DNA of 41,053 bases from Lenisia limosa (Eukaryota > Protista > Breviatea). Location: NCBI GenBank assembly GCA_001655205.1, contig LPNZ01006744.1:1-41053 (forward strand). The letters run 5' to 3'. Position 1 is the first letter of the stretch. Every line of letters starts with the position of its first letter. The translations under genes and the position numbers were made by a program. The notes beneath the pieces are model-generated. The model ran no database searches. It was not told the origin of the DNA and saw only the letters and a list, made by a program, of their open reading frames with translations. This document shows, piece by piece, positions 19,697 to 37,787 of this stretch.

Positions 19697-22574
19697 CTAT
19701 GAGCCAGATATGGCAACCTGCTCCTCACGCGGTCGGCTCCGTTCCAGACTTCTCGGCTTCTTGACATCACGCGGCTTAAAACCTCGAGGCGCCACCGGGG
19801 TGGACTTTGACAGGCTCGGCGTCGGCAGCGCGGATAGTGTTGCCTTCTTCGGCAGCTCATCCTAAAACATAAAATGCTACTGGCATGGGGCAAGTGAGTT
19901 TGGAATCACAATCATGCGCACCTTAACTACGCGACGAGAAGATGAGAGCGGCTGGGGAGGTACAGTATCGTGGGGACGCTGAGGGGTTAGTGGAGGAGCG
20001 ATAAACAAGAGACCGAAAGAGTCTCAAAAGATCCGTCAGAACAAACCTTTCTGGGGATAGGGGTTTGGTAGGGGCTGGAGCGACTAGGGGGAAGAGGGGT
20101 TTTGGGGGAAGGTGTGACCATGTTTGGTCGTGAACGGGGTGGCATAGGAGTTCTAAAAGGTGAGCTTTGTCAAGAACAAAAAAGAGATAGCTTTGGAATC
20201 CCACTCACGAGCCAGGGGCAAGAGGAAGTTTCATGGGGGTGGACTTGGGGAGGGGAGTGACGGCGCTCTCTGGGGAGCCATGCATCGGAGGTGACGACTT
20301 TTTGGGTGTTGCAAACTGTGCGTTAGCTGCTCGCCTTGCCATGTACTCCTGTGAGGTCAAGAATCGTTGTCCGAGTCGGGCTTTATTTTTCTTTTTTTAA
20401 AAAAAGCACTACACAAGATGAATGATACATACCTCTTTAGTGATAGGCTTCTTCGGGGTTTCTTGTTCAACCTCCTTCTGCTTACTAAGGTGGTGAGAAG
20501 AAGGCAATGAGATGAGAGAGCTGTGAAGCCGATAAACACAAGCAAAGAATTTGCTCCCACCGACCTGGCAGGTCTTGGAGCGAGGGGTGGTGAAGGCCGA
20601 CGCTCGGGCATTGGTCCAGTGGGCTTCTTGATGGACACAGGCTACATTGTTAGAAACTTCGGGCGTGCGGGGGGGGGGGGGNNNNNNNNNNNNNNNNNNN
20701 NNNNNNNNNNNNNNNNNNNNNNNNNNNNNNNNNNNNNNNNNNNNNNNNNNNNNTCCGTTGGCTGAACACACAAGGGTTCATAACAACAAACAAACAAAGC
20801 CCAGCCAGTCGCTTCTGCAGCACCGCATCCCATCCTCCGTGGCTCACCATAAGGGTTTTTTGCTGTGTAGGGGTCTGAGCTTTGCGCTTAGCAACGTTGG
20901 ACTCCTTGAGCTTCCTCATGACGGCCTCACGCTTGCCGGCAAGGCTGTTCTTACGCGAGATTCGGTGGAATAACTCTGGGAAGGGGTGAAACAAAGAGGA
21001 ATGCGGAGCAGCAGCGACTTTGGTACCTACTTTTGAGATCATGACCAGGAGTCACCTCGTTGCGCATGATGACTTCGAAGTATCTCGGAAGAGTGATCTG
21101 CAGGGTAAGAGGAAGTACTGGTGGACAAAGCCAAGAAAAGTCCACATTATGAACTCAAAAGACGAAAGAAAGAAGAGGATTACTCATACCTGAACTGTGG
21201 TGGACTCATCCTTGTTGATGACGTGTGAAGCGAACTTGATGACTGCGACGGCCAGTTCACGACCGGTATAGACAAGAGAGTTGGGCGAGAAGGCTCTGTG
21301 GAGGTCAGCCATATGATTCAAGATGGTGGCAGCAAGTGGGGAGATAGCATACGATGCGTTAGCGAAGTCCCAGCTTTTCTTCCTGAGTTGCTTGAAAATC
21401 TCACTATCGTGCTTGAAATGTTCTGAAGGAGTCAACATTCGTGTTTTTTTTTGTTGAACGAGTTCTTGTGAGTTACTTGAGATCCGCTTACCAGCCAGTG
21501 CGGGGAACAGCTCGAGAAGATGTACGTGGGGGGTGAAATCAGTGAAGTCAAGATTAAAGTCTTGTAATGTAAGAGAGGGGTTGAAGATCAACACAGCCTT
21601 TCAAAAACGAAGAATAGTGTGTACCTAGTCTTTTGAGAATGTCAAGTTCAGCCGAGATCACACGGTTCTTGAAGGATTCATATTCCTTCGACTCCATCCA
21701 GGTATTTTGGTAATCCTGAAGATAAGACCGATCCTTGGTGAGAAGGATCAAACCTGTCGTTCTTTCGCCGTAGTCCATGACTCTGAGAGTTTGGGACTGA
21801 ACCATAGATGTGCTCGCCAAAGAACATGTTGGATTGATCGAGGGGTATCATTAACCTTGCCACTGAGGAAGACACAAGCTACGGCAACGAACTAGGAGCG
21901 TTATACCGTTCAGGAGGGCGGAGTTGATGAGAGAGTGCATGAAATGCGGTGCCAATTCATATTTTGCGCTGATCGAGAGAAGTTTTAACAACTAGTTTTG
22001 ACTAATACGACGAGTAAGGATAGGTATGAATCCCTAATTGCGTATGAACGTCTCAAAGCCGGATAATATTCAGTACAGTTTAATTTTTGACGACAAGAGT
22101 CGTTAATAGGACCAACCTTTGAATTCCTGACATAGGGAACAAGGCTCTTATCTTTAGGATAGTCGCCCTTGTGCTCAAGCAATTCAAATTGGAAATACCG
22201 GTGAAATAGCAACATAGCATTCACAATCACCGTCGTTTGACTGGAAAAACAGTCAGATAGTTTCATTCAAAGAACGAAAAAGTGACTTATTTTGGTTGAA
22301 ATAGGGTTAAACCACTCCCTATTTACAATTCAAGCTTCAGCGAAAGGTCTTTGATCATTTCGCAGCGGTTGAACACCTTCTCAAAAAAGTCGTCTTCGGA
22401 CATGCCAGCAAGCTGAGAACGAATAAAACAGGGTTTGTAAAAGCATATTCAGGTTTAAAAAACAAAACCGAATGAACATATTGCTTTAACCCCAATTCTC
22501 ACCAAGGCAGGATTCTTGGCCAAGTCCTCCTCTCGAAAGAGGGGGAAATGATTCCCGTCGTAATCCTCAAACAT
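19697..22574 (-). CDS. Transcriptional cyclin (cyclin T/K/L family) with long S/P/K/R-rich C-terminal tail
   Basis: MFEDYDGNHFPLFREEDLAKNPAL|LAGMSEDDFFEKVFNRCEMIKDLSLKLEL|...TVIVNAMLLFHRYF...|FVAVACVFLSGKVNDTPRSIQHVL...YESFKNRVISAELDILKRLG|...TPHVHLL...SWDFANASY...RELAVAVIKFA. This matches the two cyclin boxes of CDK9/12/11 cyclins (FHRF, ACLFLAGKVEETPR, E..IL..LGF). The tail spans an N-gap; TAG at 19697-19699. Confidence 0.85.
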
Positions 22575-22929
22575 GAGAAGAAGTAGAAAAAAAGTTATTC
22601 CATAATGCCTCCCCTTTCTCCAACTAGTGTCAATATACTAACAAAGGAAGGATAAGAGGAAAGAACTTGTCAAAAATAAATTATTAGTTTAAATAGTCTC
22701 TGTTTGGACCAGTATTTATATGTTTTGTTGGCATGCGCCCAAATAATTCTATTTCTGACTTTCTGACTGCTTAGGACTCGTTCAGGATCAGGATTCCCAA
22801 GATTTCCTTGGGATCCCAATTTCTCCCTTTCCTACATTGAACACGATATGAAAAAGCGTACTTGCCTCGGAAATTTCAAAGGAATAAATAAATAACTAGC
22901 TAATATACATTCGGCTTGTTGAAACCGAG

Positions 22930-25900
22930 TTACTCGATGTTGAAGGCACTGAGAGGGGTCTCCACATACATGGGTCGGACCTGGAAGTGTCATCAAAAAC
23001 CAGAGCAGGAACCTGCATCAAATCCACCAAGTTTCTTTCAACTTTACAAGTTGATATTAACCCGCATACAGTACGCTTGGTGACATTCTCGTTGTAGTTG
23101 ACACCTTCCTCCCAGAAAAGACGGCCCATCATGTTATGGCAGCTATCGGTGTGAAAAATAGAAAAAGGAGAAAAAAAAAAAAGAGATACAAACAAAAATA
23201 AAATATGTTTAAACAAACATGACACATACGTCTTAGACTGGCAGGCACCCATTCCAGTTCTGGTAAGAGCCTTGATTTCGTTCTCATCAGTGACACCCTT
23301 TGCAACAAGCTCGCGGATCTCGCCAGCAGTTACGCGCTCGCAGCGGCAGATGATGGCTTCGTCAGCGGGGGTATCAATCTCAAAGCGGTCCACAAGGGGA
23401 ATAGAAGGAAGAGTGAAGATTGAGGCAACCTAAGACATAACAAAGAATTCAAGGAAGAACCAAGATGAAATCAATTCCCAATTCACATACCTTGGGGGCG
23501 ATTTCACGGGGGACATCGATGGTGATAAGGTGGGTATTGGAAACTTCGTCATGGTCCATATCTGTGACTTCAAATTTGCCAAGAGGGGCACCATCATCAT
23601 CCATGACTGTAACTTCAGATCCTTCCTCAACCTAGAGCATTAGTTATTTTATTTCAAGAGTGTCATTTTGTCGCTGATACTCTTTCTCCCTGTACCCACA
23701 TTTTCTTCCCAGAGCTCATAAGGCACAGTGACGGAAGCAAGAGATTCGTCTTCGTGATCATAGTCAATGAGAGTGATAGCCAGTGCAGGGCATTGTGAAA
23801 CGCTGCAAGTCAGTCAGTGTTACACAACAAGATAATTTCAACACAGCATCAAAGGCGCGCCGCTTACCATTTGGTGCAGCCGTCGCAGTCTTCGGCTTCT
23901 CCAACGTAGCTGGGCATTGCAGTGATACCGTCGCCTCCAATTTTGATGTTGTCGCGAGTGCAAGCGTCTTGACAGGGGCGGCAGGGAATGTCTTGGAAGC
24001 CTGGGGGGAGGAGGGGTATGAAACTAAAAAAAACAAAACAAAAAAACACAGTGGGGGATGGGGAGGGAGTGGTTAATGTAAAAAGACAGGTATTCTGCAA
24101 ACAGTGGAAGATAGGAACGAAAGTCTCGTTAAACTTAATAGGATCGGGGTGCTTGCGGCCAGTCACGGGTCCGGGGTGCATCTTAAGGACCTGCTCCTTG
24201 ACCTTCCAGTCATCGGGGATTTCCTTGTCAGTGGCTCCAAGGTCCTTGGCAATAGTCATACCAGCCATCTTACCGCCGAACATGGCAGAGGATGCCTCAG
24301 CTAAATGATCAACCGACTTTTCAGCAATCAACAGTCGCAACACAAAGATTTATTCCTGTCCACCAACCGATTTCCTTTGCGTCACCAGCGGAGTAGACAG
24401 GGATGCCATACTCCCTAGCCTTCTCAACAAACTCGTCACAAGGCTCAAGGCCGGTGGCGACCATAACACAGTCAACTTCGTAGTCCTTCTCAGTGCCAGG
24501 AATGCGCTTGAAGTTCTCGTCAACCTCGGCAATGGTGACACGTTCAACCTATTTGCGTCACAATTTTGAAAAAAAAAAAAAAAACCCTCGGTGATTACAT
24601 TTTCAAAAGAGCCCCTGTGGTGTTGTTATTTGATAAAATGACAACAGCTTACGTGGTCCTTGCCATGGGCTTCAACAATGGTGTGCTGGGTAAGAACAGG
24701 AGTACCAAGACGCTAGAGATGGTCAGAACAAGAAGCAAGTATCTAGTAAGAGCCCAGATGCTTACAATGAGCTTGTCAACATGAACCTTGTATCCAGAGC
24801 AGGTCTTAGCGGCTTCAACGACAGCAGCGACCTCAATTCCGGCCTGGATGGCGTGGTAGCCACCAATGACACCAACATTTCCAGCACCGACAATGAGGGC
24901 GCGCTTGCAGGGGCGGACAAGATCACGGTTCACAAGGTTCTGGAAGGCTCCAGCTCCAATCACACCGGGGAGGGTGTTACCAGGAAACGAAAGAGACTTT
25001 TCACGGGCACCAGTGGCGACCATAAGTTTCTTGGGACGGATAAGGTCGTACTTGTCGACGCCTTGGACAAGACCAATGACGTCATCGGAGAACACACTCT
25101 GAAAGAGTCAACTGAGTCATGTCCCACTGAAGACAAGAGATGAGGAAACCAGAAAAGTGCACTGATAACCCACAAACCACTGCATTGGTGTCGAGCTGAA
25201 CCTCAACAGAGGGGTATTCACGGACCATGCTATCGAGGATGCGGCCAATTTCGAATCCACGAGTACCAGCCCAGGAGTCTTCCTTAGTGCCGAAGAACTT
25301 GTGAGTTTGAAGAACCTGAGGGGGGGTCAGCCAAGTGGAAATTTGAGGTTAAGGACTGCAGACAGTATCAAAAACGGCTGGTTTAGAAAAGATAACGGTA
25401 GCCCAAGCAATCCCAACCGTGATAACAACTATCCAAGCCCAGCATACAAGTTTTCCTCCAAGTCTGTCCTTATCATCAACAAGAAGGACCTAGTAGAGAG
25501 TGAGATTCTTGAGAAGTGGGAGAGTGAGTGTAACGAAGCTGAGTAACCAAACATACTTCGACTCCAAGTTTGCCAAGCTCGACAGCAGCAGAGAGTCCAG
25601 CGGGGCCACCACCGACAATAAGAACATCAACATCGCGGATTGGGCGATGGGGGGCGGGAGGGGGAACCTCAGTGACAAGAGGAAGAGGAGGCTATTGGGG
25701 TAAGTGGATGTGGGAGAATGTCAAAAAGGAGCAATATATTCAACATGTTCTTCAAATATATTCAAGGGCACGTAGGAGGCTCATAGAAGACAAGTTCTTA
25801 CCAGTCCAAAGAGAGATTCAGCTTCAAGGCCTTGAGAGATCTTGGTCATGCATCCTTTAACAGCATGTTCATCGACAATCACTTGACATTGCCCACATTG

Positions 25901-26529
25901 ACCAATGGTGCCTGGAAAAAATCAAGGAAGTCAATCAAGATCCTTTCTGAAATTGAAGGAAAATACAAGTTGCCAAAAAACCAAATATTTTGCGACTCTA
26001 TTTAAGTTTAAACAGAATCCGAAGATGATAGCAAGAAACAGCGAAGAACTACTGCCCAAATTTATCCGTTAGACTAAACTGGTTTATATTCAAGCATTAA
26101 TTTTGCCAATAAACCTTATAAAAAAGTAGCTTACAGAAATAAGAGCGGGGAGAGCCATCCTTAGGGTGAGAGCCCGTAATATCGATTCCATTCGCAACAA
26201 GAGCGGTGGTAAGATACTCTCCTTCAAATCCCTCAAGTTCCTTGCCGTCAAACTTGAATGAAATGGGCTTCCGATCAGGAATCTCAACAACGGGGTGCTC
26301 AGTGATACGACGTCCAGTGCTTTCAGGCATAACATCAAATTCTAAAAGCAAAGTGAGTCTATGAGAGAAGCTTAGAGCTAAAAAAAGTCGGAAAGTTTTA
26401 TTTCGGGAATGATAGATTATGTTGTTAACCCTGAAAATACAAGTTATTCTTACTTAATGCAGCAGATGCCATAAAAGAACGGGCAGCAAATCGGCTGGCT
26501 GAAATAATTAATTGAATAACTGGAAGCAT
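22930..26529 (-). CDS. Fused [2Fe-2S]-FAD/NAD(P)-oxidoreductase-2x[4Fe-4S]-BFD[2Fe-2S] protein (PDH2-type proline dehydrogenase alpha+gamma+delta / HcnAB-like), ~725 aa, 16 exons, with putative organellar presequence
   Basis: RITEHPVVEIP...FDGKELEGFEGEYLTTALVANG...SYF|CTIGQCGQC...GC (2Fe-2S); DVLIVGGGPAG (FAD); LGGKL|VLQTHKFFG; ATGAREKSLSFPGNTLPGVIGAGAFQ; IVGAGNVG; AGDAKEI|AEASSAM; H|CFQDIPCRPCQDAC and CDGCTK|CVSQCP (two 4Fe-4S); IICRCERVT...TRTGMGACQSKT|C (BFD); ends VRPMYVETPLSAFNIE* (TAA 22930-22932). All junctions are GT-AG and keep frame. The leader exon (26454-26529) is less certain than the body, which starts at ATG 26330. Confidence 0.92.
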
Positions 26530-27399
26530 AGTATCGTAATCACAATAACATTTATCTAATAATATTTAATTAACAAAATAGCTATTAGGAAACGAGTATG
26601 AAAGGTATTTGCCTTCATATGCCACAAAAATCAACTTGATCCATTGTACATACCTGCCTGAGTTGAAGCCTTTAGGCCCAAAGAACCAATTGCACGAAGA
26701 AAAGACATACTTTTATATACTTATTTAATGTAATAAAAGTATTTCTATGAATGATTTTTTTTATTTTTTTTTTAATTTAAAGTGAACTGAACTTTCCGAC
26801 TTCCGGTAATGCACCCTGTTAAGTTGTTGTCCGTTCCGACTACAATCCCACCCAAATCCGACCATACGCAGCTCCACTCCTCCACTCTGGCTCCACTACC
26901 ACACTGCCACGTTTCAAAAAATCGGTTACAAATTTTAAAATCAAATCAACAAATTGTTTTCTGTGTATGTTTCTTTGTGGAGTCAACAGTTGGATCTCTA
27001 TGGTTCCTAGTTTCAATAGAGACTTTTCAGCAAAAAAAAATTGAATAATAGCAATCAAGGAGGATAGCAATTTTGTACTTAAAGGCTTAAATAGGATTTT
27101 ATAGTGGTTGATATCTGTTGTGTCTCTGCTTTACAGAGTAGAATTATCCATCTCCAGGAAATAAAAATAAAAATAGAAGTGTATTAAATAAGGTAATCAC
27201 AAAACTTTAAACCAGATATCAAAGGATCTGGGGTCGGAAATGAATGTTTCAAATTGTTCAACTTTCAAAAAGACCGAATATCAACCGCTCTAATGTCTAC
27301 ATCATCAATATATAATCAGTGTGAAATAAGAACAGCAAGGAGAAAATTTGTGAAAACAGAAATAAAACACAATAATTAATAAAGAGAAATCTATGCTAC

Positions 27400-30300
27400 G
27401 TGTATCTCAAATGTGTGATAACAGAAAGAGCTCTCAAAAGAATAGAAGAGTGACTCACTCCTTGTATGATTCTCTACCAACCTCAGCTCTGTATCTAATA
27501 TACTTGGCTCGGTTTTTGGTGAAGGGGATTGACTCACAACTACAAGATTAAACAACAATCAAAGGTGAAACCCATTTTACTCCAACATACTGCATGACAA
27601 AGTTCTCATAGCAGGGAACTACAAAATCCATTGAGTCGTTCTACGAGGTTAGTTTCGGAACCGCGTATCCAAATCTCTTAGCCAGCCTCACTTTAATTGA
27701 CTGCTTTAAGGCAGGGTCAGCCACAGCGTAATTTCGTTGTTGCCTCATCTCAATATCCAATTGGAGATTAAAAGTCTAAGATGGTTAAGGCAGAACTCTT
27801 GCGCTATTTCATATGTATGTAACAATGGACACAATGTCAACCGACTTCCCCGACCGAGAAAGCCTGTTTGAGCAAATGATACTTCTTGCTTGGTACAGTT
27901 GAGGCATCAAACTGCTCATCAATGTCCGCTGGAAACTTCAAGTCGAAAGACACGTCACGGATTCCGGCCAAAGCTCTCTCGAAGCTGCATGTATGATAAT
28001 AGCAAATTACTGTGCCTTCAAAAAACTGCCAAACCTATCCAATATGAACTGTCTCTGATGCTCTTCAACAAAGTTGAGGAGTCGGGTCTCAAGAGATTTG
28101 GGAACATGTTGCTGAAATGGATAAGCTACTTGCAAAGCCCCAATTTAAGAACCTCGAGCTTGTCCCCATGAATGTTGTTGGCAATGTAGTGTAGGTTGTT
28201 GAGGTTGAACAGTGTGCGCAAAGAGGCGTGCTTGTAGCCAGCTGATTTCGATTCCATGTTGTCAACAAGTGCCTCAAGGAAACTGCCTGATTTGGTGAAA
28301 GGAGTCAAAAAGTGGGAAAGAACAAGATAAGTGAAGATGAGTCTACAAGTTTACTTATTGCTGTAATTTTGGTAGGCAGCTAAAGAGCACCATATTTCCA
28401 GCCAACTAATTTGAGAAGAAAATGACGAAGATCCCTGTGGAGAGAACGATGAGCTGACAGAGGGATGTAGTGACATTGCCCTGGCAAGACGTTGGCGCTG
28501 TTTTAATATGTCATCTTGGGCTTCTCTATTGAATCAGTGGAACCAAATTGTCTTAAGTATTAAAATAAACTTTCTGCCCTCACGACGAGTTGGTATTGGA
28601 GTCTATTGAAGACCTCAGGGGGCTTCCACTACACGGGTTGGTCAAAATATGAATCATGAAGCAAAGTAAAAAAAAAACTATGTTTACTAATAGCTCCCGC
28701 TTCCCACCGATTAGACCTGGACATAAAGGTGGCCTCCAAGGCACTGGTATGGTCCACGATTGAGGAGAGTTTTGTGACAACAGCGACATAATCCATGAGA
28801 CGATGGAGGAAGAAAAGTGCCTGAAAGAGGTCAGATACAGATCATTATTATCCAGAAGTGAAATGTTACCCACATTTGATGCAAGGCTGTGAACAGTTCC
28901 ATCGGCAGGGATGGGCTTGAGAGGGTGATTTTCGATGAACGTAATTGCTGTTGGGATGATTGACATTACAGATTCCTTAAGTCCGTTCACTGTCTGTTCG
29001 AGAAGCAAGCTTGTTTCTTCACACTGGGTGGGGGAGGTGTAGATGAGATGAGGTCTGGACAGCGTGTTACTTGATTGTTGACACCATTGATATCAAAGAA
29101 TCAGGGCCATTTTGCTTACAGGTATGCATTCAAAGAAACCGTCCAGATGCAGTTCCAAAGCACTGAGTAGTTCGAAAACTATCAGTCCGGACACTGACAA
29201 GCCACTAGGAAGGGGTCATTGAAAACCCCAGTGAATAGAACAAAGGAGCATGCTTACATTGACAGGGACTTCGCTAATTTGGTAACAGATGAGCAGAGTA
29301 ACTCAATCATTGGACGGAGACAGCTGTCCAGGCTACGTTGTGAGAGTATTTAGAATATTGACCCACATTTGTTTGGAGAGGGAAGGCTCAAGTTCGTCAC
29401 CAAACACTTCTGAAAACAGGAGAACTTCCCCCTTTAAAATTATATCAGAATCTTGGTTCACAACTCAGCACACCTTTATGAGAACAAGAGCAAGAGGAAT
29501 GGTCTGGAGGAATGGATGTGAAGATAAGTCACTAGCGTCATGCCGCCTAGATTTCAGTCACGTATTGATAAAGCGAAGAACTGATGCACTGCAAGACATA
29601 CACAGCAAGTTGTTCTGATCGATGTATACGGTCTTTGAGGGTTTCGAGAAGGAATTCAGCGCGGTGTGTCTTGTATGTGTGGAACGCCGAATGCTATAAA
29701 GATAATAAGACAAATGCTGCAAAATCACCCCCCCCCCCCANNNNNNNNNNNNNNNNNNNNNNNNNNNNNNNNNNNNNNNNNNNNNNNNNNNNNNNNNNNN
29801 NNNNNNNNNNNACTCTGTCAAGTCTTTCTCACTGGCAAGTTCTGAATTGTAACATTAAGGTAAACTGATCACTGACCACGATAAGTCCTCACACGATTGA
29901 CTGAAGACAAAGCTCAATATCAGTGTCAGGACTCATCGCGAAACCACAAAATTCCAAATTACAACAAGTAACGAAAAAGCAGACCTATTTTGCCATTGGG
30001 AACAGGAACTTGCAGTTTGGAAGCCGAAATTGGTGTAGAAATTCTGCTAACGATAGCAATGAACATGGGTGTGAGGTGTCCGTCTGCCTTAGTCAACAAG
30101 TGACGCTGAGAGGATGATGTTGAATCAAGATATGCAATTCAGAGTATTATCTGATTTCTCTCAAAGCCCTACAATGCTATTGGCGGTTCTGTCAGCAGAC
30201 TTGAAATGACTGTGTTGAGTGATAATGTTCTGGCTTTGAAGCAAATCATCAACAGCATTTAGGTACTCTGAGAGGGAGTGCCGAGGACTAAACGATTACT

Positions 30301-35000: not shown

Positions 35001-37787
35001 GCAACACTGAAAGGTAAAAAACATCTTTGGTGACAGTAATACAATTACGATACCAGGCTTTTTCAGAATAAAGTTGTAATATTAAAAGATGCCAAAAAAT
35101 ATCACAATATTGATTTTATTGAACCAACCTTTTATCGAGGAAGTCAACCTTATCAGAAAGAGCTTCACAGCGAACGGTGCTTGCTTTCAATTTCTCTTCA
35201 GCATCTACGACATTTTTCTCTTCATCTTGCAATAACTTCTTCAATTCTTCAATCTTTGTGGTCTTCTCACCGATTTCCTTTTCTTGTTCCCGAATTACTT
35301 CTTGTTTTGCTTCGAAGTCCTTTTGAACAGAGATAGTAGTCGACTTTTCTTCTTCAATCATTTCTTCAAATTCAACACGAGCCTGTGGAAAGGGATTATG
35401 AACATAGGTCTTAGATATTATCCAAACGTATCATATTACTCTTTCTGAATTAAGTACCCTCAAATATTATGATAATTCGACATCCACCAACTTGGTCAAA
35501 TCTTGAGTTAATGCGCTCATAATCATCCCTTAGCGAAACATTGACTTCTTCCTTCTCCAAAATAACCGCTTCCAATCGATCGATCGCGACATGTGCACTA
35601 CAAAGTTTCTCATCTGCCTCTTTTTGATGCAGTAAAGCGTCCTGATAGTTCTTATTCAGTTCTGAGATGCGAAGAGACCCTTCATCAACCTCAAAGGTGG
35701 CTGCCTCCAATTTAGACTCGAAAACAAACTTCTCCGCTTGCCATTCTTTTTCTCTGTCATTTTGGGCGTTTTCAAGACATTTCAAGGCTTGCTCAGCTTG
35801 CTGTGCAGCTTTATCCGTTAGCTTCACATGTTCCAATGCGTTATCTCGAGCAAGAACTGCTTCTAAACGGTATTAGGAAACGGATCTATCCCTGCAAGTC
35901 TACCCACCAGCTCTATTACGGTTAGCTTCATTGGCATCAGCGGCGGATTTGGCTGCAGCAGATTCAGCAACAACCGCACGGTAGTCTGACGCAGCTCGCA
36001 TGGAGTCAATTCGGACCATTTCCTAAAATGGCAAGTCAGTTGTTTCCTGATGTAGCTTGGGGGGCGATTATTATTCCCCAAATACCCCACCTTATTTCTT
36101 GCCTCCGTGGCCTCAACCTGAGACTCGGCCATTTGGACAACCGCGGCAACAGCGGCTGCCCTTTTCTGTGCTGAAGGCGACGACAAAGCAATGAGTGCCT
36201 GTTTACGTAGGTTGGTGATGGCGGGCGTCGCTGGCTCCCGCGATGCTGTTACTGGCGATATGTCGATCTGGGGGGGGGGTTACATTCTTTCTGGAGATGT
36301 TAGGAGTCCAAGACAATATAACATTGTTTAGAATATGACTAGTTGCAAGAACACAACATACCTGAATTGATGGTGGTGCGTTACGAGGTTCATTTGTATC
36401 CTCAAAGGTACTTGTAACATTAGTTCGGAGAGGGCTGGCAGGCTGGGACGATTATGATTGGAATTCAGGCATACCTGGGTTTGGGGGGAAGAAGGGGGCT
36501 GAGGAGTGAGTTTTTCAGGGGAAACACTTTGAGCAGTGCGCTTGGGCCTTCTTGTGGCAGGACGGGCTAAAAATGGGGTAAGTGATGTTGGGAGGAGAAA
36601 GTGCGTACCGGATTGAGGGGGTGAAGCTACGGCTGTTGATGATGCCTAATTGGTTAGTAACCTTTCTCTGTTAAAGAAGAGCCCGAAACGTCTCTATATG
36701 AGCAGAAATGAGCTCAAAGAGGAATTCTCTAGTTAAGCTAGTTACAATGTCTCCTTCTCATTCAATGCTTCTTCCCTCTTGCCTATCAGCAAAAACTCAA
36801 ATACAAAATGATCGTTTTGTTCGTAGATATAGAATCAAAACTCAAAAAACAACTTGTCTTAATATCAGGACTCCACACGATTAATTGAGGAAATTCATTT
36901 TTAAATTTGAAGTGATACATATCATACTGTAACCAAGACTCCATATTAGACACTTTCATTTCACATTTTCAAATTAAAGAGACGAACCAAATATGGAAAT
37001 GTTACGACTTGTCCAAAATGGAGGTTCTTTTAAAAAACATCTGAGGTTGCAAAAATTAACCTTTTTAAAAATGTTGTTCATAAAAATACCATTTTTTACC
37101 ACTTTTTCTTTTTTTAACTACAGACGCTGCCAATGTTACATGCCCCCCCCAAGAATTCCAAAAGCCCAACCCAACTTTCTTAGTTGGAGACACCGATGCT
37201 CGCTTAGTCAGGACTCGGGCACCCTTTGCTGGGGGTGGTGGTGCTGGCTTAGACTGCATGCCATTTTTGAGGGCCTGGGGGGGGGGGGNNNNNNNNNNNN
37301 NNNNNNNNNNNNNNNNNNNNNNNNNNNNNNNNNNNNGAAGGAAATTTCCTGGGGGGGTCATGAACACATTGCTAAATGTTTGGGAAAATGGGTAGCACAC
37401 TGACAGAAAAGGGATGAAAAACAATGAAAAAGGAAGCGGATTGCCTCGCGTTTCTTCAATTACCTTTATATCCCAAATCCCAATCCAAATGATTGTGAGC
37501 GAAACTGTCTGGCATTTAGAACAAGTCAATTTGAGGGAAGAAACATTTCAAAATAGCTCGAGTTTTTGCGACCATCAGACCTGTAGTCTTGCAACAGGAG
37601 GGTAAACAACAGTCCCATCCCCATTCGGCGACTTTGTTGATCGTGCTGTTGAGGTCGCGGAGATTGTCTTAGAAGGGGACCTTGTTGTCGTTGAGGAAAT
37701 AAGACACGCAGACGCAGCTGCTCTCCTTGATTGCTGTAATGAGTGTGATGGAGGGGGTGGCGCTGGTTTGGCCCGATGAAACGACAT
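32031..37787 (-). CDS. Large coiled-coil protein with P/S/T-rich N-terminus (cytoskeletal/centrosomal-like); exon linkage partly uncertain
   Basis: ATG at 37787 (MSFHRAKPAPPPPS...), a second KPAPPPP exon, then long E/K/Q/L heptad-rich exons (35450-35836, 35116-35361, 34289-35044, 33534-33764, 33214-33426). Ends TEEGKRRAQNVLSLLQNDPQ* (TAA 32031-32033). No globular domain recognised. Confidence 0.65.
32635..32712. mobile_element. MITE family A (78 bp, Tc1/mariner-type), copy 1, intronic
   Basis: TA|CAGTGACCGGGACAAGTCTTGACCGATTT...AAATCGGTCAGGTCTTAACCCGGTCCCTG|TA. It has 29-bp TIRs (24/29 match), TA on both flanks and a CAGT terminus; 63/78 identical, ungapped, to the copy at 39501-39578. Confidence 0.85.
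36868..36978. mobile_element. MITE family B, copy 2 (right end truncated or decayed), probably intronic
   Basis: GGACTCCACACGATTAATTGAGGAAATTCATTTTTAAATTTGAAGTGATACATAT...AGACACTTTCATTTCACATTTTCAAAT aligns colinearly with 10816-10952; the right TIR is not found. Confidence 0.65.

Follow-up and report, generated by a model that had tools for sequence, protein, structure and literature searches.

Hydrogenosomal leaders of the Trichomonas type comprise 5–15 residues, often begin with ML(S/T/A).. and carry an Arg at position -2, and the contexts in which processing peptidases cleave have Arg at -2, -3 or -10. For breviates, Lenisia limosa included, mitochondrion-related organelles (MROs) have been described, for which machineries of import and folding as well as an anaerobic energy metabolism are predicted, and a breviate copy of SMSCB (a SMS/SUF fusion) is stated to have 'acquired a mitochondrial signal sequence' (10.64898/2026.01.29.702055). 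The most recent inventory of the breviate MRO took homology to known mitochondrial proteomes as its starting point, so that an enzyme without mitochondrial precedent could be missed. The MRO-targeted SMS/SUF copy of Pygsuia-clade breviates resembles the L. limosa gene analysed here in that both are of prokaryotic ancestry, both have a basic, acid-free N-terminal extension and both reside in a breviate with an MRO; in the Lenisia gene, however, the cargo is an Fe-S flavoprotein (a relative of SoxA and PDH alpha), the leader is distributed between two mini-exons and targeting is read from the sequence. The Lenisia leader is N-terminal, basic and of the cleavable type, as are Trichomonas-type leaders, but with its MSF.. 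N-terminus and its length of ~35–40 residues it corresponds to the classical long mitochondrial type.

The gene lies on the minus strand of a 41,053-nucleotide stretch of L. limosa DNA (contig LPNZ01006744.1; hereafter the window, numbered from its first letter) and runs in 17 exons from an ATG at 26708 to a TAA at 22930–22932, giving a product of 734 residues. Splice sites are clean in the spliced model, whose product is 100% identical, at every residue, to the EukProt protein EP01086_Lenisia_limosa_P005880 (P0274; TransDecoder 'complete'), which was retrieved with a profile built from the Cantina homologue together with six exon translations. Contigs from two sequencing runs were placed on positions 22600–27400: a single minus-strand contig of 2235 nt from the polyA RNA-seq run X1 provided 15 GT..AG joints among those listed, and the summed exon lengths (82+73+...+207+45+54) reproduce its length exactly; one near-identical contig from run X2, the source of which was probably DNA, contains the whole stretch. 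The X1 contig and the Trinity protein in EukProt probably originate from the same 2016 study, and they are to be counted as two assemblies, not as two experiments. The Logan RNA contig stops at 26707 and misses the A of the initiating ATG by a single base, a gap that is spanned by the Trinity-derived protein; at the other end of the gene the 3' UTR extends to at least 22899. With 16 introns in a coding sequence of 2.2 kb, the gene is interrupted about once per 130 nt, and we regard its structure as settled.

Within this structure, the 5' end differs from what had been predicted from the DNA alone. The original prediction placed a single 76-nt leader exon at 26529–26454, opening with ATG 26529 and followed by a 112-nt intron (26342–26453) with GTAAGA donor and TTTTAG acceptor, joined in phase 1 through an A|AA Lys codon. 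The intron, which is intron 2 of the gene, was borne out in full: the X1 joint from 26341 to 26454 (CT..AC on the plus strand; acceptor at 26342–26347) skips exactly 112 nt and is thus the spliced RNA that had been named as a check, the phase-1 lysine follows from both the RNA joint and the model, and the joint is absent from the DNA-type run X2. The exon could not be upheld in its proposed form, as the RNA contig holds only 45 nt (26454–26498) above this intron: they form the shorter side of joint 26341/26454, 35 of them fall into the depth bin 26464–26624, and they constitute exon 2 (minus strand, phase 1 to phase 1), which encodes (A)SRFAARSFMASAAL(K) and includes the in-frame ATG at 26472 (M28). 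The ATG at 26529–26527 instead lies inside intron 1 (26499–26653, minus strand, 155 nt), which has a GTATGT donor at 26653–26648 and a TATTTCAG acceptor at 26499–26506; RNA contig depth is nil over 26499–26653, the bins spanning 26464–26785 containing exonic bases only. The model that matches EukProt starts at 26708, and its N-terminus reads MSF.. in place of the anticipated 'ML' start, the first 11 residues of the predicted product (MLPVIQLIISA) being intronic.

The coding part of exon 1 (26654–26708, minus strand) opens with ATG 26708–26706 and continues with MSFLRAIGSLGLKASTQA plus 1 nt (phase 1); 54 nt of this exon are present in the X1 RNA contig within the depth bin 26625–26785, and its junction with exon 2 is fixed at the codon level by the EukProt identity (..STQA|ASRF..) and by depth-bin arithmetic. 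Exon 3 (26135–26341, minus strand) supplies the final 3–4 residues of the leader, (K)FDV, then M38 (ATG 26330, MPESTGRRITEHP) and the start of a Fer2_4 2Fe-2S domain, such that both internal ATG codons of the original prediction, 26472 and 26330, are present. The other 14 exons and 14 introns (22930–26134, minus strand) cover the Pyr_redox_2 flavoprotein core, 4Fe-4S ferredoxin-like motifs and a BFD-like 2Fe-2S region. The leader therefore does not occupy one exon but consists of two mini-exons and 11 nt of exon 3, whilst the idea of an in-frame, spliced N-terminal extension ahead of a prokaryote-like start is confirmed by the RNA joint and the EukProt identity. An arrangement that joins exon 1 to an acceptor at ~26553 (attattag|ataaatg) and keeps ATG 26529 in frame was also considered, and was ruled out by RNA depth and joints together with the EukProt identity. 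At the 5' end of the gene, no introns are richer in AT than the two of the leader (27% and 32% GC for introns 1 and 2, respectively).

The resulting N-terminal extension is 37 residues long, MSFLRAIGSLGLKASTQAASRFAARSFMASAALKFDV, and is followed by MPEST. Its initiating codon, ATG 26708, is in frame with the body, has A at position -3 and is preceded by a short 5' UTR; an in-frame TAA stands four codons upstream, and over 157 nt upstream there is no ATG in any frame, the nearest being at 26865. RNA depth is zero in 26786–26946, which places the transcription start site between 26708 and ~26785 and makes ATG 26708 the first AUG of the mRNA. Since the EukProt protein begins at M1 and is flagged complete, a transcript with ATG 26708 had been assembled. 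The leader is thus translated and is not 5' UTR, and the caveat that the predicted exon might be untranslated is answered by the same facts, ATG 26708 being the 5'-most AUG ahead of a region of zero depth. An open frame of this length is weak evidence when taken alone, with 21% of shuffles of the 111 leader nt lacking an in-frame stop. Through leaky scanning, the internal in-frame AUGs (M28 and M38) could also yield a shorter protein that stays in the cytosol.

Several features of the surrounding DNA are recorded here for completeness. In the intergenic stretch that precedes the gene, at 27007–27037, a second X2 contig of 404 nt leads from 27026 back to 27008, the two positions being separated by 13 different letters, and a loose end is seen at 27037; a small repeat may be responsible, or else a variant between alleles or assemblies. 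A separate weak RNA contig (depth ~2.4) at 27108–27400 represents another transcript, which lies upstream of the oxidoreductase gene at a distance of ~400 nt, and beyond 27298 it continues into sequence unlike the window. Runs of N, which appear as X in translated open reading frames and mark assembly gaps, are found at ~20700–20780 and ~37250–37300 of the window.

In the body of the protein, Pfam analysis of the exon translations identified PF13510 (E = 4.7e-10, exon 3), PF07992 and PF04324. A HMMER scan with exon 3 returned 187 relatives, and most matches start at residues 2–6 of the target opposite residues 8–11 of the query, which indicates that the prokaryotic proteins begin at about 'STGRR'; expressed in the numbering of the Lenisia product, prokaryotic homologues begin at about residues 42–44, M38 is situated about 5–7 residues ahead of this point and the leader reaches ~40 residues beyond the prokaryotic starts. 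Full-length relatives are 'FAD-dependent oxidoreductases' or 'sarcosine oxidase alpha' proteins of 690–700 aa from metagenome-assembled genomes of Desulfobacterota and Thermoplasmatota (53–56% identity), and the match to prokaryotic proteins of 693–697 aa is collinear over ~685 columns with the same set of domains; these Desulfobacterota/Thermoplasmatota relatives are uncharacterised and none has a leader. The best matches among solved structures are the archaeal dye-linked L-proline dehydrogenase alpha subunit (PDB ID: 1y56_A, PH1363; E = 2.7e-25) and sarcosine oxidase alpha (PDB ID: 2gag_A, 1vrq_A; E = 5.8e-24), from query residue ~57 on: they have the Fer2_4-like N-terminus and the Pyr_redox_2 core in common with the Lenisia protein, although the relationship is distant. 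Against TIGR01372 (soxA) the body scores 158.6 bits with a cutoff of 1164, and it falls outside sarcosine oxidase alpha proper. By homology, the product is best described as a prokaryotic-type Fe-S flavoprotein related to the alpha subunits of sarcosine oxidase and PDH.

The leader is located at the extreme N-terminus, ahead of the conserved mature domain, and the presequence-like composition that had been claimed for the predicted exon also holds for the corrected leader: it is rich in Ser, Ala, Arg and Leu, residues 1–37 contain five Lys and Arg against one Asp (net charge +4), and this Asp, at position 36, is the first acidic residue. In order to judge how unusual this is, we used as background 3194 windows of 37 residues drawn from homologues: S/A/T/L/R account for 62% of the leader compared with a background mean of 31%, a value as extreme as this being found in 0.16% of the windows, and the joint charge criteria are met by 0.8% of them. 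The hydrophobic moment (Eisenberg) is by comparison unexceptional and without discriminating power, since the maxima of 0.58 (11-residue window) and 0.40 (18-residue window) are reached by 27–29% of background windows, the upper figure applying to the 11-residue window. Arginine contexts within the leader are R21-F-A, R25-S-F and R25-x-F27-x-x-S30-x-x-x-K, motifs that are common at this length; we take R21-F-A, R25-S-F and the R-10-like R25-x-F27-x-x-S30 to be candidate processing-peptidase cleavage contexts, and S2-F-L-R-A-I-G8 presumably resembles a Tom20-binding pattern. Signal peptides for the ER have a short charged n-region and then an uninterrupted hydrophobic core of ~7–15 residues; inspection did not reveal such a core in the leader, whose hydrophobic stretches are broken by R5, G8, S9, G11 and K13, with basic residues distributed over 34 positions. 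A search with ESM features using residues 1–45 retrieved only eukaryotic N-terminal 2Fe-2S fragments, among them mitochondrial SDHB and complex I subunits, with scores of 0.70 or less, which is below the level of trust and makes this a weak lead.

Eukaryotic members of the family come from Cantina marsupialis (EP01029_P022149), Anaeramoeba flamelloides (4 sequences, including KAJ3443836.1), A. ignava (2) and Carpediemonas membranifera (2, including KAG9389563.1), all of which have the full-length architecture of the Lenisia protein at 45–54% identity. Counting residues before the conserved R[IVL]xxHP, prokaryotic proteins have 2–4 (K+R 0–3, D+E 0) and all 10 eukaryotic homologues have 21–48: 44 in Lenisia (K+R 6, D+E 2), 21 in Cantina (K+R 3, D+E 0), 29–32 in the six Anaeramoeba sequences (K+R 3–6, D+E 0–1) and 39–48 in the two Carpediemonas sequences (K+R 3–4, D+E 7). 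Basic, acid-poor extensions are accordingly present in Lenisia, Cantina and 6/6 Anaeramoeba sequences, and acidic ones in Carpediemonas, from which it follows that an N-terminal extension in this protein family is not always a targeting signal. The Cantina, Anaeramoeba and Carpediemonas extensions cannot be aligned with the Lenisia leader, nor can those of the different eukaryotes be aligned among themselves. In A. flamelloides, unlike in Lenisia, a single exon encodes the leader together with the first 156 residues, without a separating intron. Two side observations concern this A. flamelloides gene (JANTQA010000023.1, L001:1968-5725): a gap of ~3.7 kb separates the exon for residues 1–156 from the next, other introns being of ~160–250 nt, and the tblastn segment for residues 280–532 reaches no more than 95% identity, suggesting that a small intron is absent from the model or that the annotation differs. 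The Carpediemonas homologues differ in being 1190 aa long through a C-terminal fusion to a DAO-like FAD oxidoreductase domain of ~430 aa; this domain is presumed to be the catalytic beta subunit and points to a functional partner that the Lenisia locus lacks. A quick ML tree places the lineages of all four eukaryotes together among the prokaryotic sequences, with an SH-aLRT of 92, a result for which long-branch attraction is a possible cause; the grouping of a breviate, a stramenopile, Anaeramoebae and a fornicate hints at a single acquisition followed by spread from eukaryote to eukaryote. Orthologues from other breviates were not found among the best 120 of three profile/sequence searches, which is not proof of their absence.

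As to the origin of the leader, the caveat that its codons end in A/T unlike those of the gene body proved true of the corrected leader also: comparing the leader (26654–26708 + 26454–26498) with the body (22933–26330), GC3 is 24% (9/37) in the former and 52% in the latter (Fisher p = 0.001), and a value this low is not reached by any window of 37 codons in the body. Codon choice differs in the same direction, with TTT:TTC at 4:0 in the leader against 8 TTT and 15 TTC in the body, and with GCA favoured in the leader and GCT/GCC in the body. The low GC3 suggests a leader of more recent origin than the acquired body, or one under less constraint. The further proposal, that the enzyme was retargeted by gain of a leader exon, is conjectural: intron 2 does sit 11 nt upstream of M38, but introns are so dense in this gene that chance alone would put one within ~15 nt of the leader/body border in about one case out of five, and the Anaeramoeba leader has no exon of its own, being contiguous with the body. 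Acquisition of the leader as a discrete exon is hence not demonstrated.

In assessing what the leader does, we consider it likely, judging by its composition and by the comparison with homologues, that it serves for import of the flavoprotein into the MRO. The main competing reading is that the leader is translated but contains no import signal: it could be a neutral or disordered tail, address the protein to a different compartment, or have a regulatory or degron role, with the enzyme remaining cytosolic. The unexceptional hydrophobic moment is in keeping with this, as are the Carpediemonas extensions, which are of similar length yet acidic and clearly not presequences, the failure of the extensions of different eukaryotes to align with one another, and the GC3 of 24% with atypical codon use, which suggests weak constraint on the leader. 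Set against this are a net charge of +4, 35 acid-free positions and an S/A/T/L/R content of 62%, a composition confined to 0.16–0.8% of background windows, and the recurrence of the same basic, acid-poor combination in three unrelated lineages that bear MROs; a signal for the ER is in addition opposed by the lack of an uninterrupted hydrophobic core. We therefore judge a non-import tail to be unlikely, whilst giving it more weight than either of the alternatives that concern the gene model.

One of these holds that exons 1 and 2 act as a functional 5' UTR, with translation starting at M38 (26330) or M28 (26472) to yield a leaderless, cytosolic enzyme: M38 is indeed close to where the prokaryotic proteins begin, the Logan RNA contig ends at 26707 without the full ATG, and an open frame of 37 codons arises by chance in ~21% of shuffles. 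This is nonetheless very unlikely, because the Trinity/TransDecoder protein of EukProt begins at M1 and is flagged complete, because scanning ribosomes should use ATG 26708 as the first AUG, which is in frame and, with A at -3, in a good context, and because extensions are present in all eukaryotic homologues. The 76-nt first exon of the original prediction (26529–26454, product MLPVIQLIISASRF...) might in turn persist as a minor isoform, produced from a transcription start site within intron 1 or by retention of this intron, given that exon 2 continues the frame of ATG 26529 and that RNA data at the level of contigs lose rare variants. Such an isoform is scarcely to be expected: the RNA contig has nil depth in 26499–26653, database searches gave no protein with that N-terminus, and if intron 1 were retained the frame from 26708 would pass the donor (MSFLRAIGSLGLKASTQAGMYNGSS) into a TGA, leaving ATG 26529 as a downstream AUG.

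Returning to import into the MRO as the favoured reading, the course of events may be pictured from the established gene structure. Transcription begins shortly upstream of 26708, the introns at 26499–26653 and 26342–26453 are removed, and the first AUG at 26708 opens a continuous frame, the product of which carries the 37-residue extension ahead of the methionine near the prokaryotic N-terminus. This extension would act as a classical N-terminal presequence of the mitochondrial type that is recognised by the TOM/TIM machinery of the Lenisia MRO and then removed by a processing peptidase, where cleavage at the R-10-like site would make F35 the new N-terminus. The flavoprotein would finally work in the organelle matrix, beside other Fe-S, ferredoxin and hydrogenase enzymes. 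A broader scenario, which we put forward as a tentative possibility, is that this Fe-S flavoprotein is an unrecognised matrix enzyme of hydrogen-producing MROs: it might have been acquired once from anaerobic prokaryotes and passed among Lenisia, Cantina, Anaeramoeba and Carpediemonas, with a leader added independently in each MRO-bearing lineage (that of Lenisia from AT-rich native DNA, now in the form of two mini-exons), and it might link the oxidation of amino acids or NAD(P)H to the organellar pool of ferredoxin and hydrogenase. In the literature on sarcosine oxidase, MROs and lateral transfer, Anaeramoeba, Cantina and proline dehydrogenase, we found no discussion of this protein as an MRO component.

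A presequence on a transferred gene is an ordinary pattern for organisms that bear MROs, and the gain of presequences after transfer is well known, so that the conceptual gain is modest. The present analysis corrects the model of a gene whose leader, being assembled from two mini-exons, is invisible to a six-frame reading of open reading frames, and it brings forward an uncharacterised Fe-S flavoprotein of prokaryotic derivation as a candidate enzyme of the Lenisia organelle; by comparison, this nomination extends to Cantina and Anaeramoeba. Should the predicted import prove true, a redox module would be added to models of anaerobic organelle metabolism, and the Lenisia gene would provide another instance of presequence gain after gene transfer.
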